Source of the DNA: Octopus bimaculoides
Taxonomy: Eukaryota
Reading direction: 5' to 3'
Assembly: GCF_001194135.2 (NCBI RefSeq)
Contig: NC_068991.1
Location: forward strand, 54,224,809 to 54,288,808
DNA: 64,000 nucleotides
The notes beneath the pieces were generated by a model. It was not told where the DNA came from. It saw only the letters and a list, made by a program, of their open reading frames with translations, and did not search any database. The stretch's first letter is position 1, and each line of letters starts with the position of its first letter. Positions 8,749-43,764 of the stretch are shown here, in pieces. The position numbers and the translations under genes are program-made.

Positions 8749-9024
8749 ATGGCAGATTCGGTTTCTCTGACAGTTCCTGAAGCCCCACGGAGAAAATCTT
8801 CCTCGCCACCAAAACCTGCTGGTGGTGGAGATAACAAACCAATTTCTCCGGTTCAGATTTTGACATTTAAAATGTTTATGGTTGTCACTTATCTCAGTAT
8901 CGGTTTTGGACTTGCATTCTTTCTTGGCATCTATTACGTTTTTCTGTGGGAACCAATACGAGGAAATTATAGCCAACACCATGTATATATCGGACATTCT
9001 TCAGCGGTATTCCACCCTCAATGA
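8749..9024 (+). CDS. inaF: InaF-motif (TRP-interacting helix) single-pass membrane microprotein, copy 1 (91 aa)
   Basis: ATG in aaaATGG context. Protein MADSVS...TFKMFMVVTYLSIGFGLAFFLGIYYVFLWEPIRGNYSQHHVYIG. The K-x6-Y-x10-L-x2-YY-x3-W spacing matches the InaF motif as I recall it from Drosophila InaF-B and vertebrate INAFM1/2. The C-terminal FLWxPxRGNYSxHHxYI is shared with copies 2 and 3. Family-level call only. Confidence 0.82.
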   Translation: MADSVSLTVPEAPRRKSSSPPKPAGGGDNKPISPVQILTFKMFMVVTYLSIGFGLAFFLGIYYVFLWEPIRGNYSQHHVYIGHSSAVFHPQ

Positions 9025-9060
9025 AAGAAACATAAAATCAAAGAGATTTAGACGCTAAGA

Positions 9061-9069
9061 AAGGTTCGT
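9061..9069 (+). promoter_or_regulatory. Candidate 5' splice donor AAG|GTTCGT, 39 nt after the stop of InaF copy 1
   Basis: Weaker donor match, at a position analogous to copies 2 and 3. Confidence 0.35.
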
Positions 9070-9199
9070 TGTTTTTGAGTAATCTTTACATTAACTTTTA
9101 AATTTAAGTTACATGCTTAGAACCACTCACACACCCACGTTATAAATATGTAAACTTGTGTATGTGCTATGTATGTATGTATGTATGTATGTATGTATG

Positions 9200-9440
9200 T
9201 ATGTCGTTATTCAGTTTTATTTCAAGATTTCATGCCAATAGAGAAAGAGCCGGTTTCTAACCGAGATCCAAGGCTTCTTCATTGGAATTTCAACATCAAC
9301 CGGGTATTTTTGTAGGTGTGTATGTGTAGGGTTGTATATTTTGTTTTATGTATTCTCATGCAGGTAGTTGCATGTCTAAATATGCTCATATACACTTAAA
9401 TGATAAACTTCTGGAAAGTTTTACTGATTTTTACAGTTCC
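9200..9440 (+). repeat. Interspersed repeat associated with (GTAT)n (copies at 31773-31975 minus and 56285-56400 plus)
   Basis: Shared ttattcagtt.tatttcaagattt..tgccaatagagaaagagccggtttctaa...ggaatttcaacatcaac. Confidence 0.75.
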
Positions 9441-9477
9441 ACTACGTACGTACGTACGTACGTACGTACGTACATAC

Positions 9478-9508
<31 letters not shown>

Positions 9509-9599
9509 TGTATGTATGTATGTATGTATGTGATAAATATTCACAATACGAACAGTTTTTACTCCAAAGATTCATGACACTTTTTCAATTTATATTTTT

Positions 9600-10440
9600 T
9601 TAAATAGTTAATATCTTTTAAGAAAATCTTTCCTTCAATACTGTGAAATATTTTTTTGCAAAAACTTTTACATATATGATAATTTTCATGTACCAATAAA
9701 TGTCAATTTTGTCCCATTCATGTTTTACAACTTCCCAAAATTGATCAGAGTTTGTCAGTTTACTTCCTACAAGTTTGTCCCCTGTACAACTCCAACTATT
9801 GTCTACAGGATTCAAATCCAGTCTCTGTTCTGACTAAAATATAATTAACAGGCAGTTTTTCTTCAGCTATTTTTGTCTTTGTTCCGTTATTGTTTAGACA
9901 AAAATACCTGCTTATTGAAATATGATTTCATTGGTACTCTTTTCTCCAGGAAATAATGTTGCAGCCTAGCTTGAAAAAGTAGTCCTCTCTCTAAAAGTTT
10001 TATAAATTCCAAGGCAGTAATTAATTTTTCACCAAGAACTGCAGATGGAAATGCACACCATACCAAGATTCCAAATTTTCTATGCTTCATAGTCATTGAA
10101 ATACAATTAGCATAGAATATCAAACAAGGCAATGTTCACTAAAAGACAGCATTCACAACAATCTTGGTTTATTGCTCCAGAAGACTCTGTAAAGCATTCC
10201 TGAATTTCAGTTACCATTCCTGGTAAAAAAATATGCCACTTTTCTTTAAATTTTCTGGATTAACAGAGACGACGTAGCAAATAATCTACAGATAATATCT
10301 ACATCTTTCAACTGTTTTACAATTATCTTTCTGGAGGCAGTTATATTTCCAGCAGTTTCCTCTGAAAAACTAAGGCTTTCTGTCCCTATAGACTCATGTA
10401 GTTCCAACCTTGTCTAAATACTGTAATCCCTACAACAGAG
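9600..10440 (-). pseudogene. Tc1-like transposase relic
   Basis: Decayed motifs KHRKFGILVWCAF (~KHGGGSVMVWGAF) and NPVDNSW...KL...NSDQFWEVVKHEWDKI (~LNPIENLW...EW.KI), with stops and frameshifts. Confidence 0.65.
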
Positions 10441-10459
10441 CTAATTTCCTGGAAATATA

Positions 10460-10895
10460 GGTGCAGGTGTGACTGTGTGCTTAGAAGTTTGCTTCCCAAC
10501 TACATACTATTCAGTCGTACTGCATATAACCTTGGGCAAAAGTCTTCTATTATAGCCTCAAGTTGACCAAAACCTTGTGAGTGGATTTAGTAGACGGAAA
10601 GTAAAAGAAACCTATGGTATATACACACACACACACACACATATGATGTGTGTACGTTCGTGTGTATGTGTCTTTGTGCATATGTTTGTCCCTCACCATC
10701 ACTTGACAATCGGTTTTAGAGTATTTATAAGTCCCCGTAACTTAGCGTTTCGGCAAAGAAACCGATAGAATAAGTACCAGCTTCTACAACAAATAATAAG
10801 TTCTGGGGTCGATAAGTTCGATTTAAAATTCTTCAAGGTGGCACCCTAGAATGGCTGCAGTCTACTGACTGAAACAAGTGAAAGATAAAAGATAA
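10460..10895 (+). mobile_element. tRNA-derived SINE, family B (internal CA/GT microsatellite)
   Basis: Head gtg.ctgtgtg.t.agaag, body ccttgtgagtggattt.gtagacgga, tail ccccgtaacttagc..ttcggcaa...gactgaaacaagt. Confidence 0.8.
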
Positions 10896-11323
10896 AGAGA
10901 AACCCATACTTTTTATATTAAGTAGAGAAATATGTATTTTGTTCCTCGTTAGCTTGTGCAGGGAGCCCACTAAATATGTTGTGAGTGCTTCAGAAAGAAT
11001 TGTAATTGGATTCTTATTATCCACACCAACATGCAATATCGTTTTCTTTAATATATCTAACACAAACGGGAGATCTGCCTTTATTTAAATAGTTAAGCTA
11101 TAATTAGAGCTATTTATACACAAATTTTGATGTAAACACAAAAATAACAACAACAAAAAATCTTGTTTACTTCAATTTAAAAGAAACCTGAAAGTAAACT
11201 TAATAATATTTAACCCTTTGCCTGTCCAAATCATTTTTATAACTTTTTCCGAGATGTCCAGGTTTGTTTCCAAATTTTAGTTAATCTTTGTTTTATATAT
11301 ATATATATATATATAGGAGACTG

Positions 11324-11816
11324 TCAGAAGGATGTAAACGCCTTTGATGAGAACTCAATAAGGTTCGAAATTCGATTAAGGTTGTCGTTTGTCCAAAGTA
11401 TGTGCTCATTGGCAAAGACTAACCTCGTTTTCCAGTTTTTCACACTGATGAGAGGTTTAATGGCAGGAGAATGAGCATAAAGTCTAACTTTCTTCAAATG
11501 ACAAGCCACAGTCTTCCGAGAGATATTCATCCCGTAATCACGATTTACTTGGCGAGAAAAACCTGCTACAGTATCCAAACGGTCTCTTAATAACAGCCGC
11601 TGAATCACAGGGTCTTGCCAAACACTTGTCTTCCATGGTCTCTTTCGTTTTTCTAATGACACAAACGAACTTGTTCCCTCACAAAGCTTGAGTATTCATA
11701 AAACAATACTCTTTGATCTGTTAATGTCTCTGGCTAGCAGAAATTGCCATTCCTTCTTCTTTCAATCTGACCGCTCGCTTTCTGAGACTTTCATCAACTT
11801 TACGTCGGCTTTCCAT
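11324..11816 (-). pseudogene. Tc1-like transposase N-terminal half (HTH), frameshifted
   Basis: MESRRKVDESLRKRAVRLKEEG... then KRKRPWKT...RLLLRDR...ISRKTVACHLKKVRLYAHSPAIKPLISVKNWKTRLVFANEHILW. Confidence 0.8.
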
Positions 11817-12071
11817 GGTTGTTAATTCCCTACTGTTTAATATAAATCTTTGCACTGTTAGGTCAACTTAGTTTACATTGATCGGAGTGTTGCCAGATTT
11901 TACTTTTTGAATTTTACACCATACGTTCTCTAATTTTGTCCATCTTGTATAATTATAAACAGGGCAAATTTTTAGCCATTTCTCCGTAGACTAAAAAAAA
12001 CGACAAGCAACCTTAATCGAATTTAGAACCTTATTGAGTTCTCATCAAAGGCGTTTACATCCTTCTGACAG

Positions 12072-12104
<33 letters not shown>

Positions 12105-12508
12105 NNNNNNNNNNNNNNNNNNNNNNNNNNNNNNNNNNNNNNNNNNNNNNNNNNNNNNNNNNNNNNNNNNNNNNNNNNNNNNNNNNNNNNNNNNNNNNNN
12201 NNNNNNNNNNNNNNNNNNNNNNNNNNNNNNNNNNNNNNNNNNNNNNNNNNNNNNNNNNNNNNNNNNNNNNNNNNNNNNNNNNNNNNNNNNNNNNNNNNNN
12301 NNNNNNNNNNNNNNNNNNNNNNNNNNNNNNNNNNNNNNNNNNNNNNNNNNNNNNNNNNNNNNNNNNNNNNNNNNNNNNNNNNNNNNNNNNNNNNNNNNNN
12401 NNNNNNNNNNNNNNNNNNNNNNNNNNNNNNNNNNNNNNNNNNNNNNNNNNNNNNNNNNNNNNNNNNNNNNATATATATATATATATATATATATATAGGT
12501 ATGTATGT

Positions 12509-12888
12509 ATCTGTTATATGCAACAGTAGAAATATTAGAGTGTAATAGCCGTTTGTGTCTAATATTTGATTTAAATGCATCATGAATAAATATCAATACT
12601 GGGGTACTGGTTCATGTACAATATCTCTTATGGACCTACTATGTGTAAAATTACAAATACATCAATAGCAAACGAAAATTCATTCTTGCAGCCACATGTG
12701 AGAATGCTTGATGCGTATTTCTGCCTCGTTGAGCTTTGTCAGTTGCATGAACTCATTACCAACCGCATACTAAGACGAAATCTGGTGCTACTGATATAAG
12801 AAAACGGTGATTGAACAGCCACTGCTGTTGCAATTAGGCATAAATGACAGTTTTAACAGAATACTGCTTCTATTGCATATAACGGACT
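12509..12888. mobile_element. Possible non-autonomous DNA transposon with imperfect ~28-bp TIRs
   Basis: atctgttatatgcaacagtagaaatatt versus the reverse complement of aatactgcttctattgcatataacggac. Confidence 0.45.
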
Positions 12889-13253
12889 TTTATTCAGCTG
12901 GACGGCTAATTGCAGCATCAGTGATTGTTCTTCGGTTTGTTGGCTCAGTTTTCATTGAAATTTTGTCATTGACCGAAGATCATTTTATCCCTAGCTATGC
13001 ATGATTAAGTCTAAGACAAGGAATACACATAACGACAAGCAAAATTTGAATTTTAGTATTATATGTANNNNNNNNNNNNNNNNNNNNNNNNNNNNNNNNN
13101 NNNNNNNNNNNNNNNNNNNNNNNNNNNNNNNNNNNNNNNNNNNNNNNNNNNNNNNNNNNNNNNNNNNNNNNNNNNNNNNNNNNNNNNNNNNNNNNNNNNN
13201 NNNNNNNNNNNNNNNNNNNNNNNNNNNNNNNNNNNNNNNNNNNNNNNNNNNNN

Positions 13254-13286
<33 letters not shown>

Positions 13287-13294
13287 CCTTTTAC

Positions 13295-13479
13295 TTGTTT
13301 CACTCATTTGACTGCAGCCATGCCGGAGCACCACCTTAAAGGGTGCTAGTCAAAGAAATTGACCTCAGGACTTATTCTTTGTAAGCCTAGTACTTATTCT
13401 ATCGGTCTCTTTTGCCGAACCGCTCATGTTACGGGGACATAAACACACCAGCATCGGTTATCAAGCGATAGCAGGGCTA

Positions 13480-13515
<36 letters not shown>
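13295..13515 (-). mobile_element. SINE family B, 3' half
   Basis: Family B tail consensus. Confidence 0.75.
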
Positions 13516-13516
<1 letters not shown>

Positions 13517-14319
13517 GATACGGTTCTGTAATACATTAGCGGTGCCAATAAGTAGTTGTTAAATCTCAATATACTCATATTCACAGTATTAGAAAGGGCC
13601 GGTGGTGAGGAGTTGAAAACTGTCAGACATTAAAAGTACTCTGAGAAAGCTATAACATTCCACACAGACACTCAGCTATTGGTGGTCATTTCCTTATAGC
13701 AGAAAGAACAGTAAGCTTTTGAAAGTGATTACGTAACTCTTGTTCTTTTGTGATTCGAATACAAATGCACACACATACGTGAATGTATACGTACACACGT
13801 AAATGTATGGTGTGTGCGTATTATATGCTGTAAATATTAAATACCGGTTAAGTAATCTTTCCCTCCGGCCACCTGACCCGTCAAACAATTAATTCTATTT
13901 ATCTGCACGAATATTTGGGATAAAAACAAACATTTTAAGACGTCAAGCATTAATTAAAGCGGTTCTAATTAGGACCTGAAATCATGTCGACCAAATGACG
14001 GTCTAATAAAGAGTGGTGTATGTGTGCGTATATATGAGTATGTGTGTATGGGCATGTGCATGCATAAGTGAATGCATATACTTGTATGTGTGTGTAAATG
14101 TTAAATCTGTATACATGTGTGCATATGTATACATATGCATGCGTATGATACACACACACACACATACACACACAGACACACACAACACACACACATATAT
14201 TCTCCGAAGCAGACGTAAATTGAGTTTATACGCACACTCACACACACTCTCTCTTTCTCTCTTTCTCTCTTTCTCTCACACACACGCGCACACGCATATA
14301 TATGCATACGATGGGCTTC

Positions 14320-14470
14320 CACGCAGTTTCTGTTAACTAAATTTACTCTCAAGACATTGGTCGACCCGGAGCTATAGAAGAAGGCATTTCCCCAAAGTGT
14401 CGCGCAATGGGATTGAAATCCAAACCACACGGTTTGCAAACCGAGCTTCTCAGCCACACAGCCATGCCTG
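14320..14470 (-). mobile_element. SINE family B, 5' half, followed by a compound CA/CT microsatellite
   Basis: Family B head consensus. Confidence 0.7.
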
Positions 14471-14859
14471 CTTATGAAGCCTGCATACCCGCTTTAATAA
14501 ACCACGGTAATATCGAACAACGTACAATCAGAACTTATTGACTGAAAATAGCTTTCTTGCAGAGAATGAAATTTGATATATTTCCCTCAGGTTCAAACGT
14601 TGCAGATTTGATTAATTTCTGGTGACCATTGTTCTGCAAACATATTTCAAAATTAATGAAATTTGCCCCGACTTCAGAACGACATCCAATTGTGAACAAA
14701 TATTTTCATCGATGAAATTCATATTAAATAATCTCACGACTGACTGAATGAAGCTTGAAAAGTTTTCTGTTGTTCTCCATAACTAATTTAAGAACAAACA
14801 TTGACGGAATCAAAACAGACTGAAAAGTCTCATCAAAAATGATGTTTACATTGTTTCTA

Positions 14860-15013
14860 GGGGTGCGGCGTGGCTGTGTGGTAAGAAGGTTGCTTTCCAA
14901 CCACATGGTCTCGGGTTCAGTCCCACTGCGTGGCACGCTGGGCAAGTATCTTCTATAGCCTCGGGCCAACCAAAGCCTTGTGAGTGGTAGACGGAAATTG
15001 AAAAAAGCCCGTC

Positions 15014-15048
<35 letters not shown>

Positions 15049-15250
15049 TGTCAATGTTTGTCGCCCCACCGTCGCTTGACAACTGATGTTGATGTGTTTA
15101 CGTCCCCGTAATTTAGCGGTTCGGCAAGAGAACCGCTAGAGTAAGTACAAGGCTTACAAAGAATAAGTCCTGGGGTCGATTTGTTCGACTAAAGATGGTG
15201 GTCCAGCATGGCCGCAGTCAAATGACTGAAACAAGTAAAAGAATAAAAGA
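14860..15250 (+). mobile_element. SINE family B, full length
   Basis: A box TGGCTGTGTGG, B box GGTTCAGTCCC, internal (GT)n, tail aaaagaataaaaga. Confidence 0.85.
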
Positions 15251-15694
15251 ATATTATCGAGTGAGCAATAAACAAATAAATAGTAAAAAGAAAATTGTAT
15301 ATCTCACAGAACATCCCAAAACTAGACACCAATATTTAAGCATTATCTAATCCTAATTAGGTTACATATGAAGAAAACCAAACAATACCAAAGTAAGTGA
15401 TCCTCACAAACTTTGAATCCACAATCAATTACCACTTTACACGAATGAAGTACAACCCAGAATAACTAGACTAAGATATAAGAAATTTACAGTTGAGCAT
15501 AACATGTGCATTCCCATCATTAGCTGCCTAAACGGATACCACTATAGTTTCGACACTGGTATATCCAATGCTTCTTCCTTGGACTTCGACTTAAAATTAA
15601 AACTTCTAATCCCTGATTAATTTAATTTGAAATGATTGTCTCGCTTACAATTACTGGTCATCAGGGCACGCCACATATTATTATAACATGTTTT

Positions 15695-15880
15695 AAGGAG
15701 GCGGGCTGGCAGAACCGTTAAGCACGCAGAGCAAAATGTTTAGTGATATTTTGTCTGCCTTTACGTTCAGATTTCAAATTCTGCCAAGGTCGCTTTTACC
15801 TTTCATCCTTTCGGAGTCGATAAAATTATCACTGGTCAAATACTAGGGTCAATGTAACTGACTTTTCCTTCCCTTCAAAA
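15695..15880 (+). mobile_element. SINE family C
   Basis: Family C consensus. Confidence 0.75.
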
Positions 15881-16056
15881 ACAAGATTTGGAACCACCAT
15901 AACACATTTCACAGGAACAAAATGTTGGTGCAAGACACATAGGGTGAATTTGAACTTATGCAAGAAATAACTGTCGTCTGAAATGGAAAATAGTGGCGAG
16001 CTGACGTAACTAAACCGTACAGTTGACTAGAAAAAGCATACATACATACATATATA

Positions 16057-16183
16057 CAGGGTGTCCACAAAGTCTGGGTACGTGGAGTAAATAAAATCAT
16101 GACATAAACAATTAAATATAAGAAATAATAATTTCTTAAAGTACGTGTTAATCCCCATGTACCCAGACTTTGTGGACACCCTG
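16057..16183. mobile_element. 127-bp Tc1/mariner-type MITE
   Basis: Perfect 25-bp TIR cagggtgtccacaaagtctgggtac, with TA on both flanks. Confidence 0.9.
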
Positions 16184-17013: not shown

Positions 17014-17048
17014 CCAATAATAACAACAACAACAACAACAACAACAAC

Positions 17049-17113
<65 letters not shown>
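17014..17113 (+). repeat. (AAC)n/(AAT)n microsatellite
   Basis: Direct reading. Confidence 0.95.
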
Positions 17114-18479: not shown

Positions 18480-18990
18480 AAGCGCTTCGCTTCCTTTGGA
18501 GCAGAGGCCATCGGCGAATTTCTTCTACTCTTCTCGACTTTGAGTTGTCGTTCCTGATTCCCTCGACTCGGATCCTTACTTTTTCCTTTCAGATTTTGCT
18601 GCACCACTTCCTATGTTTCCCTGAGGGAAAGCCTTCCTCTTCTAGATCTTTTGTTTATGAATTATTATTGATGTTTCTGTAACTTTGCTTTTTCTAGGTA
18701 AGGATGTTGGCTTTATGCAAACCCATTTTTGCCTCTGGGAAGAGAAGGTTCATGTTAGTCTAACCTTTACCCTCTGACCTATCCAGCATGGGAGGCCCTG
18801 CCAGGAGCTTGCAATCTGGTGGCTTAGCTCTCTCTGGATCACTGAGGCATGCAAGCCACCACACTACAAAAAGTATTTGTAATAGATTTAATGTCTTTGT
18901 CGAAGGAAAATTTGCAGTGCCCACAACCCTTTTCAGGGGATCCGTAACCAATGGGAACAAGGAAGGAAAACTCGGTTTCAATATTTGCTA
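18480..18990 (-). mobile_element. Internally deleted RTE-like LINE (5' UTR-like part joined to 3' end)
   Basis: Minus strand reads ...KSRRVEEIRRWPL / DGLCSKGS, resembling the RTE C-terminus (WR.FV.GLC). The upstream part resembles an RTE 5' UTR. Confidence 0.45.
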
Positions 18991-18994
18991 CAAA

Positions 18995-19430
18995 AGCGGT
19001 GAGCTGGCAGAATCGTTAGCACACCGGAAAAAATGCTTAGCAGCATTTCGTCCGTCATTACGTTCTGAGTTCAAATTCCGCCGAGGTCGACTTTGTCTGT
19101 CATCTTTTCAGGGTCGATAAATTAAGTACCAGTGGAATTCTGTGGTCGATGTAATCGACTTGTCTCCTCCCTTAAAATTTCAGGTCTTGTGGCTTTAGTA
19201 AAAGGGATTATTATTATTATTAAGGTGGCAACCTAACAGAATCATTAGCAAAATGCTTAGTGGCATTTCCTCCGTCTTTACGTTCTCAATTCAAATTCCG
19301 CTGAGGTCGACTTTACTTTCCATCATTTCGGTGTCGATAAAATAAGTACCAGCTGAGCACTGAGGTTAATGTAATCGGTTTACGTCTTTTCTTGAATTTG
19401 ATGGCCTTGTGTCAAAATTTGAAGCCAATA
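18995..19430 (+). mobile_element. Two tandem family C SINEs
   Basis: Family C consensus twice. Confidence 0.8.
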
Positions 19431-25519: not shown

Positions 25520-26450
25520 ATAATGACGGGAGCTAGGCTAGAAGTTTGAGAAAACACTCGAAGCGCTAGGATAGTTTAGGAGGAAGTTTCAAACAGATCA
25601 ACGTGCGCGACTTATCATCACTCGAATCAGAGATGGTTTTCAGGTAGATGGAATTGTTTATAATGTCAACAAGAAACTTTCAGGAAGACCGCGGACATCG
25701 AAGAGTCCCACAAAGGAAGAAAGGGTATTAGAAACGTATTGCCAGAATTCAAGAAAATTTACGCAGCAAATGATTCTTGAGACAGAGATTTTAAAATTAA
25801 GAGTATATTGCAATTTGAAATACTGCCATTGAAAAAGTTACATTCCAAGAATTGTTTGTACTTCAAATGAAAATAATCGGGAACGAAGAGTGTAGTTTTG
25901 CGAGTGGCACTTGGCAGAATGTGCACAATTGCGCCTATTGAGGACCTGAGAATCCACATGTTACTAAGGAATATCTTGTTAATTTACCAGAAGTTAAAGT
26001 ATGGTGCAGCTTATAGTCAAAAGGATTAATTGGACTATAAATTTTTGACTGTACTTTGACTGGTTCTATTTACTTGAACTCGCCGAGCACCAGGGAGGGC
26101 TTTAGAGATGTGGATTTTTATTTCCAACAAGATGAGCGTCCTAACACTTCCACAGTAATGTAAGGGCTTACTTCGTTGAGAAAAATGCTTCCCCTGGACG
26201 AGGAGGTTAATTAGAATATTCTCTGAATTCACCAGACATCATACTACTAGACATTTTTATGGAAATACATAAAAGACAAAATTTACAAAACACAACCGGT
26301 GACAGCCGTCAAATTGATGGCCGCCATTGAAAGAAAATACTCACAAATACGGAAAGAAATGTTTCTTGATGTTTGCGATTCCACTACTTAGCTTCATCAG
26401 TTGTGCCTAGACCAGAATGGTCACCAATTTGAAAGGAAGCATTTATAAAA
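25520..26450 (+). pseudogene. Tc1/mariner transposase relic
   Basis: FRRKFQTD...GIVYNVNKKLSGRPRTSKS near the 5' end and LMAAIE...VCDS...LCLDQNGHQFE at the 3' end. Confidence 0.6.
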
Positions 26451-26985: not shown

Positions 26986-27220
26986 AGGCGGCGAGCTGAC
27001 AGAATCGTTAATGCGGGGGTGGGGTGGGGGGTGGAGGGAAAATGCTTAACGGCATTTTGTCCGCCTTTACATTCTGAGTTCAAATGCCACCGGGGTCGAC
27101 TTTGCCCTTCATCCTCTCGGAGTCATTAATATATATAGTACCAGTTGAACACTGGGGTCGATGTAATCGACTTATCCCCTCCTCTGAAACTGCTGGCCTT
27201 GTGCCAAAATTTGAAACCAA
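26986..27220 (+). mobile_element. SINE family C
   Basis: Family C consensus with tail ggccttgtgccaaaatttgaaacc. Confidence 0.8.
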
Positions 27221-27818
27221 TATTAGCTCGTTTGTTATTGTCGTTTAATACCAATTCATACCTGATCGTGAAAACCTAGAATCAAAAGCGTTTCATTTGT
27301 GATCAAGCCGTCTTTAGGATTTTAGGTATAAATGCATCAAGGAGTACATTATCGAAAATGCACTTATAAGTACTTATTATTTACTTCTCAATTTTTAAAA
27401 TTTTTGAATGTATCAAAAGATAAAGTATTGTTTATTTAAGAGGATAAAATGCGATGAAAGAATATTAGATATTAAATAAAAGTGTAAATGTAAAAGGTCA
27501 ATCTGTTTCAGGCCTCAAGACTCGGATTAACAAGAAGAGTAAAACAAGAGTGAAAATGTGATAGATCAGTGAATTTCGTTTAAAAAAGAAAGAGATGAGG
27601 TATAAACCAAGAAAGAACAGAAATAGAGAAAGAAGCGAATGATATTTAGAAGGGAAAGTATTTAAGATTCAAGTAGTTTAAAAACTATGAGAATATATTA
27701 AGAGTGTCCAGTGTTTTCATTCATTACTGAACGGACATACCTGAAACAGGAGCCGTGTGGAACTATTTCTAGTGTATTCTCTATTCTATTATTCCGAATT
27801 ACAAGGAAGGATATTAAA

Positions 27819-28079
27819 ATGTTGACTGATACAAACAGGATAAAATACGCGGGCACTGGTTATGAAGATGAAGTAGAACCAGACAAAAGGGATCATATGA
27901 TTATGAAATATAAATATTTGGCATTTAAAATGGTTATGATTTCAATTTATGTTTCTCTGATACTTGGTACTGCCGTCTTTTTAATGGCTTATATATTTTT
28001 GTGGCATCCTATCAGGGGTAATTACAGTTCCCATCATATCTACATCGATCATCAGAAACCTCTTTACCATTCGGAATGA
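27819..28079 (+). CDS. inaF: InaF-motif microprotein, copy 2 (86 aa; one Tyr of the YY pair deleted)
   Basis: First in-frame ATG (aaaATG) inside track ORF 27711-28079. Protein MLTDTNRIKY...DKRDHMIMKYKYLAFKMVMISIYVSLILGTAVFLMAYIFLWHPIRGNYSSHHIYIDHQKPLYHSE, with one hydrophobic segment. Confidence 0.8.
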   Translation: MLTDTNRIKYAGTGYEDEVEPDKRDHMIMKYKYLAFKMVMISIYVSLILGTAVFLMAYIFLWHPIRGNYSSHHIYIDHQKPLYHSE

Positions 28080-28088
28080 AGCATTTCA

Positions 28089-28097
28089 GAGGTAATA
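28089..28097 (+). promoter_or_regulatory. Candidate 5' splice donor GAG|GTAATA, 12 nt after the stop of InaF copy 2
   Basis: Exon would end at 28091. The identical site is conserved after copy 3. Confidence 0.55.
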
Positions 28098-28496
28098 CAA
28101 TTATTTATCTGCTTTTACTGTTGTAGAGTGTCCCAGCATCTGTTATGTGAAATTGTTAAGAATGTTTATGCTTTGGTAAAGAGAAGGGTGCTCTAAATTA
28201 TGACTTCAGATCAAGTTGATTATAATCAACCATATATGACTTAGAGGTGATTGATCTCGTGTTTTCGAGGACAGTGGCAATATTCAAATTTCTTCTTTGA
28301 GCTAGTTGCTGGTTCAAACTTAACATCCTTGATGGCATTTGCTTTCAAACGAACATGTACAACTGTTTTTACAATACCTGTATCGCTATAAGGTACTGAG
28401 TTTATAATATCACCGTATATACTTAAACAGTTTACTTTAGAGATGAATTAAACAATTTTTGAACATAAAATAATCAGATCAAATATCAGCGTATAT

Positions 28497-30660: not shown

Positions 30661-31959
30661 AGTCTCTATATTTCCCTGAATTAACTTTTTATTGTCTGTT
30701 GGGGTTGAAGTCATACTTTAGCTTTGATATACACTTGTTAACGGTTTAAATATGCTTGAGGCATATTCAAACCAGTAAGAAAATCATTCATTACGTTTTG
30801 TCATGGAAAAGAATTCTCCATGTCAGTTCGGAGCGCCCTCTACTCAGATTAATGGATGCGTGCATTTAGGAGTAGTTATCTCCTCTTCAAGAGCGCTCCG
30901 AACTGATTGGTCCGAACTCGTTTACACCTATTTGGCTACAGTGAGAATTTTTGTCATGACAAAATATAGTGAACAGCTTTCATACGTGTTCGAATATGTC
31001 TGAAACATATTTGAACAAGTAACAAGTCTATATTTGTGCACATCATTGCTTAGCGCTTCTAATCCGTATCTTACCTTTTAATATTATATTAAAAAGTAAA
31101 CTCTAGCATCAGTTTGGAATGAAAATAAAATTTTTCATTTTGACACTTACCATAAACGTCATTAAAATTTACCAAGTTACGTCATAAAACTGCTTCTGTA
31201 TGTTTATTCAAGCCAATTATTTATGTTTACTTGTGATTATTAGGATTCTGCTAAACACACACACACACACACACACNNNNNNNNNNNNNNNNNNNNNNNN
31301 NNNNNNNNNNNNNNNNNNNNNNNNNNNNNNNNNNNNNNNNNNNNNNNNNNNNNNNNNNNNNNNNNNNNNNNNNNNNNNNNNNNNNNNNNNNNNNNNNNNN
31401 NNNNNNNNNNNNNNNNNNNNNNNNNNNNNNNNNNNNNNNNNNNNNNNNNNNNNNNNNNNNNNNNNNNNNNNNNNNNNNNNNNNNNNNNNNNNNNNNNNNN
31501 NNNNNNNNNNNNNNNNNNNNNNNNNNNNNNNNNNNNNNNNNNNNNNNNNNNNNNNNNNNNNNNNNNNNNNNNNNNNNNNNNNNNNNNNNNNNNNNNNNNN
31601 NNNNNNNNNNNNNNNNNNNNNNNNNNNNNNNNNNNNNNNNNNNNNNNNNNNNNNNNNNNNNNNNNNNNNNNNNNNNNNNNNNNNNNNNNNNNNNNNNNNN
31701 NNNNNNNNNNNNNNNNNNNNNNNNNNNNNNNNNNNNNNNNNNNNNNNNNNNNNNNNNNNNNNNNNNNNNNNCTGTAAAAATCTGTAAAACTTTCCAGAAG
31801 TTTATCATTTAAATATATATGAGCATGTCTAGATATGTAACTATATGCATTAGAATACATACATACATACATACATACATACATACATACAAACAAAAAT
31901 ACCCTGTTGTTGATGTTAGAAACCGGTTCTTTCTCTGTTGGCAAGAAATCTTAAAATAA

Positions 31960-32460
31960 ACTGGATAATGACATACATTCATAGAAGAGTTGACTATATC
32001 TCAAAATATGAGTATCGTCCTGTCTGACCATAATTCTGAAGGTATTGAGATCATTGCTAGGCATTGTTTTTTGAGCATGTCTGGTGTTCACAGTAATATT
32101 CATCCATCCTCATCTTTAGAACACGAGAAGTTTCTGCAAGACATCATAGAACTTATTAGTCTAAAGGTATGCAAATTAATTTCTCGTCTTGCTTTTCAAG
32201 AATAAAAGTGTCGTTCATACTGATCCGCTGGAGTTAGGTCAGTAGTAACGATTAATTGCTGCATTGGTTTACCTTACCCAGGTAATGCGTAAACTATTGA
32301 CGTCATTTTTATGAGCATGGAACACCCCATGAATATCAAGAATAATTCCTTTCCTGAGAGTTCGAATATTTGTGTGACGCAGCTGTACCAGCTGCTGCTC
32401 AACCCTCATGGAAGGAATCTGAAGGAACTTTGGCTTTTCACCTGATAGAAGTAGAAAACC
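31960..32460 (-). pseudogene. Highly decayed Tc1/mariner transposase relic
   Basis: Weak resemblance to VFW..G / WPP.SPDLNP blocks. It abuts the 5' edge of cassette B. Confidence 0.3.
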
Positions 32461-32917
32461 AACAAAACAATAAACTTACTCTTGGATGTTAAAAGTCGGC
32501 ATTTGTATGTGTCAAAAGATAAAGTATTGTTTATTTAAGAGGATAAAATGCGATGAAAGAATATTAGATATTAAATAAAAGTGTAAATGTAAAAGGTCAA
32601 TCTGTTTCAGGCCTCAAGACTCGGATTAACAAGAAGAGTAAAACAAGAGTGAAAATGTGATAGATCAGTGAATTTCGTTTAAAAAAGAAAGAGATGAGGT
32701 ATAAACCAAGAAAGAACAGAAATAGAGAAAGAAGCGAATGATATTTAGCGGGGAAAGTATTTAAGATTCAAGTAGTTTAAAAACTATGAGAATATATTAA
32801 GAGTGTCCAGTGTTTTCATTTATTACTGAACGGACATACCTGAAACAGGAGCCGTGTGGAACTATTTCTAGTGTATTCTCTATTCTATTATTCCGAATTA
32901 CAAGGAAGGATATTAAA

Positions 32918-33181
32918 ATGTTGACTGATACAAACAGGATAAAATACGCGGGCACTGGTTATGAAGATGAAGTAGAACCAGACAAAAAGGATCACATGAT
33001 TATGAAATATAAATATTTGGCATTTAAAATGGTTATGATTTCAATTTATGTTTCTCTGATACTTGGTACTGCCGTCTTTTTAATGGCTTATTATATATTT
33101 TTGTGGCATCCTGTCAGGGGTAATTACAGTTCCCATCATATCTACATCGATCATCAGAAACCTCTTTACCATTCGGAATGA
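32918..33181 (+). CDS. inaF: InaF-motif microprotein, copy 3 (87 aa; intact YY)
   Basis: Near-identical to copy 2, with DKKDHMIMK...LMAYYIFLWHPVRGNYSSHH. DKK-x2-M-x2-K-x6-K matches the recalled INAFM2 segment DKKAKMAAKTNKKWVR, followed by the full motif. Confidence 0.82.
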   Translation: MLTDTNRIKYAGTGYEDEVEPDKKDHMIMKYKYLAFKMVMISIYVSLILGTAVFLMAYYIFLWHPVRGNYSSHHIYIDHQKPLYHSE

Positions 33182-33190
33182 AGCATTTCA

Positions 33191-33199
33191 GAGGTAATA
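33191..33199 (+). promoter_or_regulatory. Candidate 5' splice donor GAG|GTAATA, 12 nt after the stop of InaF copy 3
   Basis: Exon would end at 33193. Confidence 0.55.
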
Positions 33200-33622
33200 C
33201 AATTATTTATCTGCTTTTACTGTTGTAGAGTGTCCCAGCATCTGTTATGTGGAATAGATTAAAAAAAACCTACGTTTCAGTACCACATGAAAGATAAGGA
33301 TCTACTAGTAGACAATATATGGAAATGGTTTTAGTGACGCGTTATCCCGAATACTCGGAGAAGTGACAACGATTCTGTTGATGGTTCAATCTGAACATAT
33401 TTCAATCCATTTGCTATCAAATAACGATCCAAATAACGATCTACAATTGTATTTATAAAGGTTTTATTTCTATAATGTATTGCATTAATGAAATCAATGT
33501 AAATCGCTTAACTTTGGGATATTTTAGAAATAATTCAGAAATTATTTAGAGATAATTTTCATATACTTAGAAACCAAGGAAAGAAGTCATAAAATGGAAT
33601 ATCAAACAAAGTTTATGTAATA

Positions 33623-36570: not shown

Positions 36571-36648
<78 letters not shown>

Positions 36649-36745
36649 ACACACAATTCATACATGCATACATACATGCATACGTGCATAAATGCTTCAT
36701 ACATACATACATGCATACACACACACAAACACACACATTGTACAA
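36571..36745 (+). repeat. (CA)n plus degenerate (CATA)n microsatellite
   Basis: Direct reading. Confidence 0.95.
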
Positions 36746-38699
36746 TGCCGAGCTTACATATTAATGCAGACATGTACGCATAATTTCTTCCATACTGTAA
36801 TTAATACTACATGAAAAAGGTCACGAAACGGCTGTAATCTTATGGGAATCATATGACTATTATGTATATTTACCTTACATATATGTATACGTACATATAT
36901 ACACACAGATATATACATACGCATAAGGATTAACAAAATCACAAAGAACACGCTAATCACAAGATTACGGTTATAAGCTGTTAATGCTGCTGTCAAAATA
37001 TGTTTACGAGCTTCAGTCAGTGCTGGTTTGCCATCATTTTGGAAAACGATTTTCAAAAGTTCTTCCACAAGAAACATTTTAGTCATTTTTCACTAATAAT
37101 TCGAAAGTTCAAAGAAAACAAAATTTAAAAACAAAACACGCACACAGATGTGTTGCNNNNNNNNNNNNNNNNNNNNNNNNNNNNNNNNNNNNNNNNNNNN
37201 NNNNNNNNNNNNNNNNNNNNNNNNNNNNNNNNNNNNNNNNNNNNNNNNNNNNNNNNNNNNNNNNNNNNNNNNNNNNNNNNNNNNNNNNNNNNNNNNNNNN
37301 NNNNNNNNNNNNNNNNNNNNNNNNNNNNNNNNNNNNNNNNNNNNNNNNNNNNNNNNNNNNNNNNNNNNNNNNNNNNNNNNNNNNNNNNNNNNNNNNNNNN
37401 NNNNNNNNNNNNNNNNNNNNNNNNNNNNNNNNNNNNNNNNNNNNNNNNNNNNNNNNNNNNNNNNNNNNNNNNNNNNNNNNNNNNNNNNNNNNNNNNNNNN
37501 NNNNNNNNNNNNNNNNNNNNNNNNNNNNNNNNNNNNNNNNNNNNNNNNNNNNNNNNNNNNNNNNNNNNNNNNNNNNNNNNNNNNNNNNNNNNNNNNNNNN
37601 NNNNNNNNNNNNNNNNNNNNNNNNNNNNNNNNNNNNNNNNNNNNNNNNNNNNNNNNNNNNNNNNNNNNNNNNNNNNNNNNNNNNNNNNNNNNNNNNNNNN
37701 NNNNNNNNNNNNNNNNNNNNNNNNNNNNNNNNNNNNNNNNNNNNNNNNNNNNNNNNNNNNNNNNNNNNNNNNNNNNNNNNNNNNGCATTATTCATCCACC
37801 TCGAGGGTCCCTTCGTAGCGTCGAGCCTTTCCATCCGGGCTATATCCGTAGGAACCCTACCCGTTTAACCTCTGACCAGAACCTAATGGCAATTCCTTCC
37901 ACTCCCGAGGCCATCACATTCGTCTCGAGTGACAGCCCCAAAGTAAAAGAGGCCAACGCTAATCATCCACCCGTTCAAATGACCCCTCTCTCTCCCTCCT
38001 CACTTTCTAGCAAAGTTCCTCGGCTGTTCACATGACGTTACTAACCCTATACCTCCGGCCCACCGCAGCCCCATAATCTGAGATGCCAGAACATTGTTGA
38101 CTTATAGCAAAGAAAAGTTGTTTCCTTGGTTCTTCTCTCAAACAAATTAACTCATTCAATTTTCAATGGTTTTGACAACTTTTCAATGTACCGAGATTAC
38201 TGTTTTTAATTTATTTTTGATTTAATAAGTAATTAGTAAATGGGCGTATATTACATGACTAATATACCTGGTGTACAAGCTACTCACACACCAACCCACC
38301 CACACATACATACACACACACATGTATAAGCGCGCGCGTGTCTGTGTTGTTTTGTTTTCCTTATCCATTGACCAACCAAAACCTTTAAATTTTACTGAGG
38401 CCTTAATTGTCGTAAACATGTGCTGCATATGAATTATGGAGTTACGTTCCTTTTCTTTCTCCAAGAATCCAAGCTTAGCCATACGCTGCTCCACACAAGT
38501 AAGCACATGTCTTGTCGCTCCAGTAATCAGAAATATAATGCTGAATGTGTTTTCAAACACTTCGCCAATAGTCCGTCCACGTTTTCTTTTTCCCGTGATA
38601 TTGACATTAAAGGGACAGCTGACTAGCACAGTGAAACATACTTTTATTGTGCGGAATCATAGTCAAACGCCTTCTTTTAATGTAGTCATGAAATCAGCA

Positions 38700-39400
38700 G
38701 ACTTTGGTAGTGATACTTCGCTTCCTTAAGGATAGTTTCGTTAATAAGGAGCAGTTCGGAACAGTTCATATGTCACCACAATGTGTATTTCACACTGATT
38801 CTGGAGGAAAACATTCAAGCAGTACATTCAAGTATTCTATGCGCTTGTAATTTTCGGCCACAAGCGTCTCTTCTCTTAGTTTTTATTTATGAGTGTCGTG
38901 CGTATAACTATCAGTTGGTCTGCCAGATCGAGTTCAGCGCTCATTGTTCTTTTGATTCGGTTAACGAGGGTTGTCAGATATACCCCGGATGATTTTTCTG
39001 TCCGGTAATTTTGCAACAACCATCGGAAGAGTTTCACTGATGATATATATTTTGGAAAAGACGTTTGCGTAACACTTACTCTGTCGCTCGTTTAACTGCA
39101 TTGCATCAACATTGTATTGTTTGTGTATATTCCAAACCTCACGAGAAAATGATCACGAATCATTCTGGTGACGGGATTTTAGAATTTCTGATCATATTTC
39201 ATCCATTACTTATGGATTTAATGTAAACTTGCGATTGATAGTTCTATGTTCTAGGAATTTCTGATGATTACGAAATTTCTCGCCACCGTTCGTTATTCAC
39301 GTTTAAGTGCAATTATCTTCGCTCCCATAGACCTAAGATATCGAATCGTAAAGTCGCTGCTGGTGGTTTCTGAATTTATTATTCATTTTGCATATAACAT
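38700..39400 (-). pseudogene. Decayed Tc1-like transposase relic
   Basis: Weak resemblance to the R..R.KP.LT..QK..RL..A region, with many stops. Confidence 0.35.
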
Positions 39401-40019
39401 TAGTGTCTAATTAGACAATATTTTCCCTCAATCTGTCACCTTTTTTTTAGAGAGGTCATCTATTTTGGTGGTGTTTTCTCGTTACAGTTAATTACAGTTA
39501 CTGCCATCTGCTGGCGAATAGTAATTGCTACACAGTACAGTAAGACATTCGATGTCTCCAGTCTGTGCTGGATGTTCTTTTACAATTTTAGTGATCACGG
39601 ATAACATCAAGTAGATAGGTTTCCTATCATAATCGTCCTTTTAGTTAGATGATATAAATAGTTGTTAGTTGATATAAATGGTGAAGTTTTGCTTCAATTT
39701 TGCTGTTAGCTGTAGATCCGAGATATATTTATTCTTCACTCTTTTCTGTTCATAAGCAGCTACCGCTTGCCTGTTTAATAACAGTAATCTTGTCTTAGTA
39801 TTGTTATTATTGTTGTCGCATCAGTCGGTTCACGTACTTCTCAGGAGAGAATCTACTGACAGTTTGTTCTGAAAAGCAAACTTTTTTATATTCATTAACA
39901 AAAGCAACTTGTATCTGTTTGGCACCAAAATCTGAATAGCTGGGGTATTTTACACCTCAGTACTTCATCTTTTTCAGGCAACCGATTGAGGGATCTTCCC
40001 TAGACTTACTTTGTAAAAT

Positions 40020-41458
40020 TTATACAGATCTTGACTGAATTCAAAAGTCCATGCCGTCCAACAACGTCGTTGGACGCTGGACGGTAAAGTTGCTTGGGGT
40101 TTGGTTCGGACCAGATTTCCAGATGGATAAGAATTGGGACGAGGTGACGAACAGAGTAGCCAGTCTCACCCAGAAATGGGCTGCGAGGAAGCTATCACTG
40201 AAAAGTCAGGTAGAGGTGGCAAATGCGTACATCGCGTCCATCATCTACTACCGCCTGACCATCGTACCTTGCTCCCGTTCGCGCCTCGCCAAGTTGGAGC
40301 GCCTCCCCTTCAAATTCTTGTAGAAGGGGCAGGTTTTGTTGATGAGGCAGTCCATCTGCTGCCAATACCCTCGACGTGGAGGGCTGGGCATGCCGCGGAG
40401 GCTGAGGCATCTCCAGATATTTTGCCTAAACGGTGAACAGGTGTGGTTGCCGTTTGTCAAACAAGCCTTTCCCCCAGCTCGTCTTCTTGACTGACCTACA
40501 GTCCTGGGTCAAGAAAAGACTCAGATAGGGGGACCGGCACCTGGAATGTTGCTAGGCACTCACTGCGCTCTACCAGGCGGGAAAATTGGTCAGTGGAACA
40601 CCCACCCTTGAGTTCTATAGAGAGTTAGTGGTGGAAAAGTGTGATGACGCACTCGGAGAGGCGCTGGGCGTCGACGAAGTCGAACTGACCAGCTTGTTCA
40701 GGAGAACTTTCGAGCCTGGGACGATGGATAACTTCCAGAAATCCCTCGCTTGGCAGTGCTACCGAGGGGCACTGTTGGTTCGAGATAAATTCTATAGGAA
40801 CAGAAGTGCTGTCAGACGAACCTGCCCAAGATGCGGTATCCATGCATTATTGACTTGTGGAGTTATATCGAACAGCTGTTGTCGCGTGTAGGACGGATCC
40901 AGCTATCCACTGAGTCTATAATGAAGATTGGCCCGCCGCCTTCCTTTGGCCAGGAAGAGAAGACAATTTTCCTGTCTGGTAGCAGTAGCGAAAGAGATTG
41001 TATGATAGACCAGTTTGAAAGGGCTGAAGACAGACACTTTTCTCTTCGACCAATCCCTCATCAGCTTTTTAAAATTTCTCTTGGAAAGGAAGATGAGGGT
41101 GGGGAGAGAGGTGATTCCTCCCAGTACATTTACTGAAAGGTGGGTGAATGTAGCGAAAATGGCACGTGTGAATGGACCTGCTCTATTAATGCGCCTGTAG
41201 GCTGGTGAATTTGAGAAAGGGAGGTGTACTCTTCCCGAGTACCCTCAAAGTGTCAGGTGGTTCAGGATTGGTGGGGTACCTGAGCTAACCCTGGGTGGTT
41301 ATCGCCCCTATTGGGGAAATCTCATTGTTATATCGATTTTGTTTAATCTTTATTGTTATTGTTTTCCTAATTGCCTACTTGTTGTTTTGTGTAAAACCAC
41401 CACTGTCCCCGTCTACTGTATTGTTCCCTATATGTCGGCCCTAGAGGCCGATAAATGA

Positions 41459-41460
<2 letters not shown>
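40020..41460 (+). mobile_element. 5'-truncated L1/Tx1-like LINE (RT C-terminus plus zf-RVT), pseudogenised, with (TAA)n tail
   Basis: VKLLGVWFG...KWAARKLSLKSQVEVANAYIASIIYYRL, GGLGMP, DNFQKSLAWQCYRGALLVRDK...CPRCG..HAL. Stops and frameshifts are present. Confidence 0.85.
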
Positions 41461-41514
<54 letters not shown>

Positions 41515-41519
41515 TAATA

Positions 41520-41551
<32 letters not shown>

Positions 41552-41562
41552 AATAATAATAA
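41458..41562 (+). repeat. (TAA)n(TGA)n(TAA)n compound microsatellite
   Basis: Direct reading. Confidence 0.95.
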
Positions 41563-43245
41563 TAAACAGAACTGGATGAGGATACAACTGTTACGGCAAA
41601 ACAATCAGCCACCTCTTATATGTGGATGACCTAAAACTGTACGCTATAAACGATAAACAGCTGGAAACATTGCTANNNNNNNNNNNNNNNNNNNNNNNNN
41701 NNNNNNNNNNNNNNNNNNNNNNNNNNNNNNNNNNNNNNNNNNNNNNNNNNNNNNNNNNNNNNNNNNNNNNNNNNNNNNNNNNNNNNNNNNNNGCCAGACA
41801 TACGAATACTTAGGAATCAATGAACTAGATACGATACAACACACACAAATGAAAGAGAAGATAAGAAAAGAATACTATAGACGAGTTAGATTAATACTGA
41901 AAAGAGAGCTCAATGTGAAAAACAAGATAAAGGTATCAACACTCTGGCCATCCCAGTTATAAGTTACAGCTACAATATTCTTAACTGGACTCTAAATGAA
42001 CTAATCAAAATAGACAGGAAAACAAGAAAAATAATGATAGGATTTAGGATGCGCCACCTAAAATCTGACATAAAAAGGTTATATATACAACGTATCAAAG
42101 GTGGAAGAGGCCTTATACAGCTAGAAAGCTATTACAAAATACTCACCATATGACTACAGAAATACCTACTTCAGAAGCAAGGAAAACTAATACAAATAGT
42201 CGCAAAACAGGAACAAAACAAAAAACTTTTCAGTATTTAAGGAAGCTGACAAATACAAACAAGAAGTCATACTATCTTACAGCTATGAAGAAAAAGAAGA
42301 AACAACAAAAACTGTAAAACAATTGAAATCCAAACTAAAACTAGAACAGCAACAGATCATGATAAAATGATAGCAAGAAAGCTTCTTCATGGCAAATATT
42401 GCATTAAACAAAACGCAAAAGAAATAGACAAAGCAAAATCCCAACAATGGCTGAGAAGCTTAGAACTCAAAGCAGAGACTGAAGGATTTTTAATTGCAGC
42501 ACAAGACCAAAGCCTCCCTATCAGAAGTTACCAGAAACATATAATGAAAAGAAACATAACAAGTAACTGCAGAATATGTGGAAATGGACAAGAAACAATA
42601 AACCATATTGTCTCTGGCTGCCCAGTCCTGGCTAAGAAGGAGTATATTCATAGACACGACAGAATTGGGACCTATATACACTGAAAGCTATGCTAACACT
42701 ATGGAATAACACCAGAAAAGGACACAGAAAATGAGAAAGCAACATTACTATGGAATTTGCCAATACATACGAATAGAGAAATTAAGGCCAATAGGCCGGA
42801 TATAGTTGTCAGAGATCATCAAGAAAAAAAAATGCTTTATAATTGATGTATCTATAGTAACAGATGACAACGTTTCTCTAAAAGAAATGGAGAAACATTC
42901 AAAATACAAAGACCTGGAAATAGAGGTTACTCGAATGTGGAGCCTATAAACAGGAACAATTTCTATCATAATAGGCGCAGCAGGTATGATAAAAAAATAT
43001 ATTCAGACAAGTACATAACAAAAACACCAAGACTAACAAATATATATAACATACAGAAAATTGCACTACCAGGCACCACATACATCTTAGGTAAAATACT
43101 TTCAATACAGTAACAATAACAGCATCGCAACAAACCACAGCACATACCCAAGGCACACAGAGCTGCGTTCGGTAGTGCAGTGAAAACACGTGATAAAAAT
43201 AAGACTATTGAACAACAACAACAACAACAACAATAATAATAATAA
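41563..43245 (+). mobile_element. 5'-truncated R4/Dong-like non-LTR retrotransposon (RT, CCHC finger, restriction-like endonuclease), pseudogenised
   Basis: ISHLLYVDDLKLYA (RT), GGRGL, AETEGFLIAAQDQSL, CRICGNGQETINHIVSGC (C-X2-C-X8-H-X4-C), ANRPDIVV...IIDVS...K..KYKDL (PD-(D/E)xK type). (CAA)n(TAA)n tail. Confidence 0.9.
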
Positions 43246-43586
43246 TTATACTGTAAAAGGAACTCTCATAACAATGGACCAGTGACATTTACCAGTACCA
43301 GCTGATCTAGGGCTATAGCTAAGATACTTTTGTGATATTTTGTAAAGTACTGCAACTTTGCTTTAAATATTACATGTTTTAATGCACTAAAATATGTACT
43401 GATGAAATAAGGTGCATCTAATATGCCTGTATATTTTTTATGCCATCAGATACTGTAAAAACGCTTAAGCTAATCTTGAAGCAAAACAAATAATAAAAAA
43501 TAAATGGAGACATACATGATCACAATACTTTTCTGTTTGATGATTTCAAATTTTTTATTGATTTTTCTTTTGCTTTTCTTTTACAG

Positions 43587-43764
43587 ATTTTGTCAAAAAC
43601 TTTGCGGAAACAAACCACGACAGCATGCTCGCACTACAGGATTCTAACATCAGGACTGGAAAAATTGTAGAAATATTAACAGTTGTAGGAAATCTCAGCA
43701 TTATACTACACAGATCATTTCGGTGTTGTGAAATAACTACAAATCCAATAGTAACTAGGACATG
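43587..43764 (+). other. Candidate 178-nt spliced exon of unknown product
   Basis: Strong acceptor tttttcttttgcttttcttttacag|A and donor ATG|GTGAGC. One frame is open throughout (FVKNFAETNHDSMLALQDSNIRTGKIVEILTVVGNLSIILHRSFRCCEITTNPIVTRT). Confidence 0.45.

Follow-up and report, generated by a model that had tools for sequence, protein, structure and literature searches.

Cephalopod phototransduction is rhabdomeric and based on transient receptor potential (TRP) channels, and no auxiliary subunits dedicated to the phototransduction TRP channel of Drosophila are known other than the InaF proteins, which are almost unstudied outside flies. The closest described system is the Drosophila inaF locus, which the sequence-only reading that our analysis followed up had described as a set of exons that each encode one small InaF protein and splice to a common noncoding exon. 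This description is essentially right: FlyBase cites inaF-A to inaF-D for their shared 3' untranslated regions (3'UTRs), as an "extreme example" of such sharing (PMC4528330), INAF-B is encoded by exon 1 of its transcript (PMC3433705), and the fly InaF proteins are single-pass partners or auxiliary subunits of TRP channels (PMC3433705, PMC13012068). Human INAFM2 is a single-exon gene encoding 153 amino acids (PMC13012068). Our literature search found no paper linking InaF to cephalopods. Here, we describe a tandem cluster of three small open reading frames (ORFs) of the InaF family in a 64,000-nucleotide (nt) stretch of the Octopus bimaculoides genome (contig NC_068991.1, positions 54,224,809 to 54,288,808; hereafter the window), and consider how far its probable gene structure resembles that of the fly locus.

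Three InaF-Family Reading Frames on One Strand

The three frames lie on the + strand of the window at 8749–9024 (ORF1, 91 amino acids), 27819–28079 (ORF2, 86 amino acids), and 32918–33181 (ORF3, 87 amino acids), exactly where the sequence-only reading had put them, with uninterrupted reading frames, and each appears to be complete within a single exon. A six-frame motif scan of the window found no InaF copy beyond these three. The corresponding Pfam family (PF15018, InaF-motif, "TRP-interacting helix") has a gathering cutoff of 21.8 bits, which ORF1 exceeds at 24.7 bits; ORF3 lies under it at 16.4 bits and ORF2 gives no match, such that we assign ORF2 and ORF3 to the family by their homology to ORF1 (BLASTP 1e-22 for ORF1 against ORF3) and not by Pfam score. 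Together with the C-terminal motif described below, these results bear out the earlier description of the ORFs as tandem InaF-family proteins on a single strand. Exact-protein look-ups of ORF1, ORF2, and O. bimaculoides P0003 returned no record.

For comparison, we used four further loci. The Argonauta hians contig L005 (BAAFZT010000086.1) carries three InaF ORFs on one strand within 9 kb, and the Octopus-like genomic contig L001 carries one more; PF15018 matches the three Argonauta copies and one Octopus copy (Arg_a 23.3, Arg_c 24.5, P0002 27.1, and P0004 24.3 bits). We note that Argonauta copies a and c (L005 7455–7688 and 16173–16448) are missing from the called genes of the record, where only copy b (P0002) is annotated. 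The other two loci are Logan contigs that both carry an InaF paralog: L006 comes from a whole-animal RNA-seq run of the cuttlefish Sepia pharaonis (SRR3011300; PMC5541922), and L007 is a transcript-like relative that is 85% identical to it. The proteins called on these contigs (P0006, 131 amino acids, and P0007, 150 amino acids) arise from an in-frame TGA stop that the gene caller took as Trp; with the standard code, L006 231–512 and L007 261–542 both give a 93-amino-acid InaF protein ending in HPEGR before the stop.

All copies share the motif W-x-P-[IV]-R-G-x-Y-S-x-H after the transmembrane helix, and every start codon has an A at position -3, with ORF1 also having G at +4. The lone hydrophobic stretch, FKMFMVVTYLSIGFGLAFFLGIYYVFLW, coincides with the PF15018 match at residues 41–71, as read directly from the sequence, and the three window ORFs are accordingly predicted to encode small (86–91 amino acids) single-pass membrane proteins. 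From their homology to INAF-B and INAF-C of Drosophila, such proteins would most likely act as auxiliary subunits that bind and stabilize TRP-type cation channels.

Among proteins on record, the best relatives of ORF1 come from Argonauta hians and Octopus bimaculoides. ORF1 has its true ortholog in Argonauta copy c, with 71% amino acid identity between the two (72% between the sister copies of Argonauta and Octopus), and the cuttlefish paralog is equally distant from both copy types (49–55% identity), which, with the SINE-like repeats shared with Argonauta (see below), fits an octopod better than a squid. The comparison of ORF1 with its ortholog gives a ratio of nonsynonymous to synonymous divergence (dN/dS) of 0.11 at saturated synonymous sites (dS 1.6), a pattern that identifies ORF1 as a real, constrained gene under strong purifying selection.

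The history of the other two copies is more recent. ORF2 and ORF3 belong to a 760-bp duplicate, in which the segments 27403–28162 and 32502–33265 (both + strand) are 98% identical, lie 5.1 kb apart, and have unrelated flanks on both sides. The duplicated segment contains ~415 nt of upstream sequence (with TATAAA at 27601–27606 in copy 2 and 32700–32705 in copy 3), the ORF, a donor-like site GAG|GTAATA (last exon base 28091 and 33193, respectively), and 71 nt past this donor, and no downstream exon was copied along with it. Judged by these sequence comparisons, ORF1 is the ancient copy, and ORF2 and ORF3 are the products of the recent duplication.

It could be argued that only two of the genes here are functional, with ORF3 (or ORF2) being either a duplicate in decay or an artefact of the assembly. 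The window is a draft scaffold in which a gap (31277–31771) separates two copies that are 98% identical, the dN/dS between ORF2 and ORF3 is ~0.9 (from only 5 changes, too few to judge selection), and ORF2, besides having no Pfam match, is without one Tyr of a YY pair that is kept in every other family member. However, both reading frames are intact, the sole indel between them is in frame, and the unrelated flanks lie in contiguous sequence on both sides, and we therefore consider this explanation rather unlikely.

Promoter-like Regions and Donor-like Sites after the Stop Codons

Outside the coding sequence, the comparison with Argonauta delimits a compact unit around ORF1: window positions 8312–9074 align with L005 15713–16497, and nothing further does. 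Against a background identity of 35%, the identity is 67% over 8310–8570, 52% over 8571–8748, 73% in the coding sequence, and 62% in the 39-nt stub between the stop codon and the putative donor, with 8 of the first ten bases of the putative intron equal and 39% (38.6%) identity past the donor. The first of these segments, 8310–8570 (+ strand), is a conserved block rich in TAAT and GATTA cores that we consider a putative promoter or cis-regulatory module. Its 67.5% identity (background 35–39%) exceeds what is retained at synonymous sites, which are saturated, and since there are stop codons in all conserved frames, the block is noncoding. Within it, positions 8369–8448, which lie 300–380 nt before ORF1, reach 80% identity, equal to the conservation of the coding sequence, and are dense in homeodomain-type cores (TAATGATTAG, TAATCGG, and TTTAATC). 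Motifs of the GATTA/TAGAT type also occur upstream of ORF2 and ORF3 (CGGATTAAC and ATTAGATATTAA) and of copy b in Argonauta and Octopus (ATTAGATTATCA), and these elements may represent a shared cis-regulatory signature.

The genomic set in which TATA-like hexamers and donors were counted comprises seven InaF ORFs from three cephalopods (three in the window, three on Argonauta L005, and one on the Octopus-like contig L001). A TATAAA lies at 8556–8561, 193 nt before the ORF1 ATG. The TATA-like hexamers of ORF2 and ORF3 are at -218, and those of most other copies fall between -160 and -214, such that six of the seven copies have one ~160–220 nt before the ATG; one hexamer has been conserved in Argonauta copy b and Octopus alike. 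In the 460 nt upstream of the window ATGs, we found no acceptor of at least 6 bits. Taken together, these features give each ORF exon the appearance of a first exon that has a promoter of its own. The ORFs may alternatively lie in internal exons preceded by an acceptor; a TTATTAG|CAG at ~8696 is partly conserved in Argonauta but scores <6 bits.

The sequence-only reading placed a donor-like site shortly after each stop codon, and these sites are present exactly as described: AAG|GTTCGT at +39 from the ORF1 stop (9063/9064; stub and putative 5' splice site at 9025–9073, + strand, last exon base 9063), and GAG|GTAATA at +12 from the stops of ORF2 and ORF3 (28091/28092 and 33193/33194). Taken singly, however, none of them stands out. 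By position weight matrix (PWM), they score 4.7 and 5.5 bits, respectively, and equally good sites occur 2.8–4 times per kb, corresponding to P = 0.16 (ORF1) and 0.11 (ORF2 and ORF3) per 45-nt window. It is the comparison between loci that changes this assessment. The donor block of ORF1 equals that of its Argonauta ortholog (Arg_c, AAG|GTTTGT at +38) in 15 of 18 bases, which only 7 of 5000 shuffles reach (P ~0.0014), and this conserved block stands in contrast to both the saturated synonymous sites and the background identity directly 3' of the donor. Furthermore, a donor-like site lies 1–42 nt past the stop in all seven genomic InaF ORFs, from four independent lineages (Fisher P 0.0023), the remaining examples being AAG|GTAAGA at +1 (Arg_a), CAT|GTAAGC at +42 (Arg_b), and CAA|GTATGT at +39 (L001), while the two transcript-like contigs have no donor-like site after the stop (score ~0, P 0.6). 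These comparative data lift the donors above chance, such that the ORF1 donor is supported by conservation and a real intron in the 3'UTR is likely. As an aside, an element containing (TATG)n lies at 9159–9325, ~100 nt inside the putative ORF1 intron; it recurs at 56247–56412 (87.6%), 47 kb downstream, and inverted at 31772–31983, and is a dispersed repeat and not a gene feature.

The simplest alternative is that these are independent single-exon genes, in which the GT sites after the stop codons are unused and transcription reads through to a polyadenylation site a few hundred nt on. Such sites would be available, with the first poly(A) hexamers at +671 (ORF1), +368 (ORF2), and +77 (ORF3). 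The sequence-only reading had pointed out that no AATAAA follows copies 1 and 2 within ~150 nt, which is true, but as an argument it is uninformative, because AATAAA and ATTAAA together occur ~2.2 times per kb. The Sepia paralog also fits a single-exon gene: L006 and L007 end 10–26 nt past a poly(A) hexamer, after a 5'UTR of 230–260 nt, a coding sequence of 282 nt, and an unbroken 3'UTR of ~510 nt, and on account of these ends both contigs look near full-length. Being without a donor is what one would expect of a spliced mRNA, but equally of an intronless paralog. What this alternative does not explain is that the ORF1 donor block has been kept at the orthologous position while the sequence next to it has fallen to background, or that a donor recurs in every genomic copy, and we thus find it unlikely that the post-stop sites go unused.

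Taking both sides into account, we put the probability that this locus is an InaF cluster of self-contained units, each with a 5' splice site after its stop codon, at roughly 0.6. Several observations weigh against this reading. The window donors on their own are not beyond chance and are weak by a generic PWM, and the ORF1 donor (GTTCGT), like that of Argonauta (GTTTGT), has an uncommon T at +3; this weak and unusual site is the main internal counterargument. The PWMs themselves are approximate matrices for metazoans in general and not for cephalopods. The ~510 nt of uninterrupted sequence past the stop in L006 and L007 is compatible with an unspliced 3'UTR in the Sepia paralog, and vertebrate INAFM2 has a single exon (PMC13012068). 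In addition, TATA-like hexamers are common in DNA of 37% GC, and the dN/dS of ~0.9 between ORF2 and ORF3 provides no evidence that both copies are maintained.

Proposed Downstream Exons and Other Elements of the Window

The preferred reading can be summarized as a tandem, same-strand cluster of three InaF genes, in which each unit would consist of a promoter-like upstream region, a 5'UTR of ~160–220 nt, a one-exon ORF, and a donor 12–39 nt past the stop, giving mRNAs with an intron in the 3'UTR. At least one further exon downstream would then have to supply the poly(A) site along with the remainder of the 3'UTR. For a cluster growing by copies of the ORF exon alone, the most economical arrangement would be one such exon shared by all units, like that of the fly, and two observations favor it: the only recent duplication copied promoter, ORF, and donor, and there is no noncoding similarity between the paralogs (outside the coding sequence, paralogous similarity in Argonauta and in the window is limited to repeats of the short interspersed nuclear element (SINE) type). 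Nevertheless, we hold the sharing of a common 3' exon only tentatively, at somewhat below even odds.

The same donors could instead lead to a private downstream exon for each gene, that is, a 3'UTR intron without any sharing. There would be room for such exons, with 18 kb available behind ORF1, 4.4 kb behind ORF2, and 1.9–5.4 kb between the Argonauta units, and strong acceptors lie nearby, for example at 9950 (12.0 bits). Moreover, L006 and L007, as de Bruijn contigs, cross the presumed junction unbroken, which would be easier to understand if no exon were shared among expressed isoforms. On the other hand, the 760-bp duplication of ORF2 and ORF3 took no downstream exon along, and no paralogous similarity extends beyond the coding sequence in Argonauta or in the window. 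On balance, private exons appear possible but on the unlikely side.

The more specific proposal of the sequence-only reading was that all three donors join a common acceptor at 43586/43587, described as a very strong orphan acceptor. The site (TGCTTTTCTTTTACAG|A) does have a strong consensus, scoring 11.8 bits and ranking in the top 5 of 3147 + strand AG sites, and the donor that closes the candidate exon 43587–43764 (+ strand; ATG|GTGAGC at 43764/43765) scores 9.5 bits, in the top 12 of 3338. The two form the best-scoring + strand acceptor–donor pair downstream of ORF3, on the same strand as and 3' of all three ORFs, and if the donor were skipped, the AATAAA at 43912–43917 would define a terminal exon of ~350 nt, which resembles the post-junction part of the Sepia 3'UTR in size. 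The distinction is less clear when the whole window is considered, as a census at slightly lower thresholds gives 16 acceptor–donor pairs per strand, with pairs of similar quality at 18593–18697, 18698–18998, and 40954–41139, and at 42147–42282 on the - strand. In view of these comparable pairs, that at 43587–43764 is good but not exceptional. Acceptors of 10.6–11.2 bits also lie nearer to the ORFs (34950, 36443, 39978, and 40954).

The candidate exon itself offers little to connect it with the InaF transcripts. Searches against the Argonauta (20 kb), Octopus, and Sepia sequences and the rest of the window (blastn with word size 7, and tblastx) found no similarity, and the same searches found no homolog of the Sepia 3'UTR in the window, in Argonauta (20 kb), or in the Octopus contigs. 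Its frame 3 is open through all 58 codons (P ~0.05), which hints that it could be a coding exon of another gene, although its peptide has no homolog by k-mer search and no Pfam match. The only match in an exhaustive HMMER search, P0008, was rejected as a homolog: this 168-nt tandem-repeat ORF comes from a metagenome contig of 24% GC, each stretch of the match reaching only ~24 bits at 30% identity, and we attribute it to composition and repeats. The candidate exon lies ~0.5 kb 3' of a + strand fragment of a long interspersed nuclear element (LINE; zf-RVT, 42289–42681). C-terminal fragments of such non-long-terminal-repeat retrotransposons occupy 40039–41133 (+) and 41890–43110 (+), just upstream of the exon, and the 3' part at 42863–43052 recurs at 45524–45716 (84.5%).

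The assembly adds a further caveat to the 43587 proposal. The window (37% GC) contains 20 runs of N, none of which falls within an ORF unit or within 43587–43764. The ORF1 unit (8312–9074) is 104 nt from the gap at 7636–8207 and 3030 nt from that at 12105, the nearest gap to the ORF2 unit is >3.1 kb away, the ORF3 unit has gaps at 730 and 984 nt, and the candidate exon is >1.4 kb from its nearest gap. The proposed intron, in contrast, which would extend from the first donor to the acceptor (9064–43586, 34.5 kb), includes nine gaps with 2822 N in total, among them that between ORF2 and ORF3. How the ORFs are ordered, oriented, and spaced with respect to the acceptor consequently depends on scaffolding, and the gaps could conceal exons. 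We regard splicing of all three donors to 43587 as improbable, and 43587–43764 as just one candidate for a common exon.

At its most ambitious, the preferred reading could be extended to an inaF "complex locus" common to flies and cephalopods, in which tandem promoter-plus-ORF exons, each coding for an entire auxiliary subunit of a TRP channel, are each spliced just after the stop into a common untranslated 3' exon, either inherited from the protostome ancestor or arisen twice within this gene family. The distance from stop to junction, which is below ~50 nt (1–42 nt in the seven copies), would then look as if it had been selected to escape exon-junction-dependent mRNA decay. We consider this extension doubtful as a whole. 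Of the sequence-only reading, the observations are thus largely borne out, and the interpretation is plausible but supported for its first half only.

The remaining features of the window are largely of transposon or repeat character. A SINE-like repeat of ~190 nt occurs on both strands, in >15 copies (2755–2941, 6926–7125, 19009–19208, 27036–27224, 45339–45531, 62742–62934, and others), 75–89% identical to repeats in L005; ARAGORN found no tRNA-like gene in the window, and an Rfam scan of the window likewise found nothing. A remnant of a Tc1/mariner transposase helix-turn-helix (HTH) domain lies at 11327–11695 (-; PF01498, 45.7 bits), a weak HTH_32-like transposon fragment at 25575–25829 (+), and a Pif1/Helitron-like helicase C-terminal fragment at 60240–60509 (+; UvrD_C_2, under the cutoff). 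An intronless frame of ~165 amino acids at 54476–55069 (-, Met near 54970) resembles TPPP/p25-alpha (PF05517, 22.0 bits against a cutoff of 22.6, nearly full-length) and is possibly a single-exon TPPP-like gene or a retrocopy. Finally, 50341–51108 (-) holds a 256-codon, low-complexity frame, rich in Ser, Asn, and Thr, beside extended (AAT)n/(ATT)n microsatellites; Pfam gave no match for this frame, which is unlikely to be a gene.

Comparison with Known Systems

The clustered protocadherins and UGT1A are variable-first-exon arrays, in which the unit is a promoter plus an exon ending in a donor and the array expands by duplication of this unit, the shared exons being coding and completing the protein. 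By comparison, the cephalopod units are alike in that they appear to consist of a promoter and one donor-ended exon, duplicated as a unit. They are unlike in that the stop codon precedes the donor, such that any shared exon would be untranslated. Were a common exon to be confirmed, the cluster would provide a second, very distant case of an unusual architecture that shares untranslated sequence only, and could be used to test if this kind of architecture survives for >500 million years; if there is no common exon, the cluster amounts to no more than a small gene family whose members have a 3'UTR intron. A conserved InaF cluster, with strong purifying selection on ORF1 and conserved upstream modules, offers definite candidates for partners of TRP channels in the eyes and skin of cephalopods.

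The vertebrate proteins INAFM1 and INAFM2 (ROME) resemble those described here in having the InaF motif as the transmembrane helix of a small single-pass protein, whereas INAFM2 is a stand-alone, single-exon gene of 153 amino acids, with neither a cluster nor a 3'UTR intron (PMC13012068).

The closest likeness is to Drosophila inaF-A, -B, -C, and -D, where several small InaF-motif ORFs likewise stand in tandem at one locus, and where a complete ORF in an upstream exon is followed by a 3'UTR intron, which is putative in the cephalopod. The shared 3' exon is documented in the fly but is a hypothesis for the cephalopod cluster, where the intron would moreover span tens of kb. Beyond the ~30-residue motif, the cephalopod proteins do not, on the present evidence, align with those of the fly, the Pfam motif alone matching, and they have an extra C-terminal block, W-x-P-[IV]-R-G-x-Y-S-x-H-H-x-Y-I. 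With these differences in mind, the locus is best described as a new InaF-family cluster, conserved and mildly unusual in its gene structure, which matches the fly locus in family, in tandem layout, in its one-exon ORFs, and in a probable 3'UTR intron.

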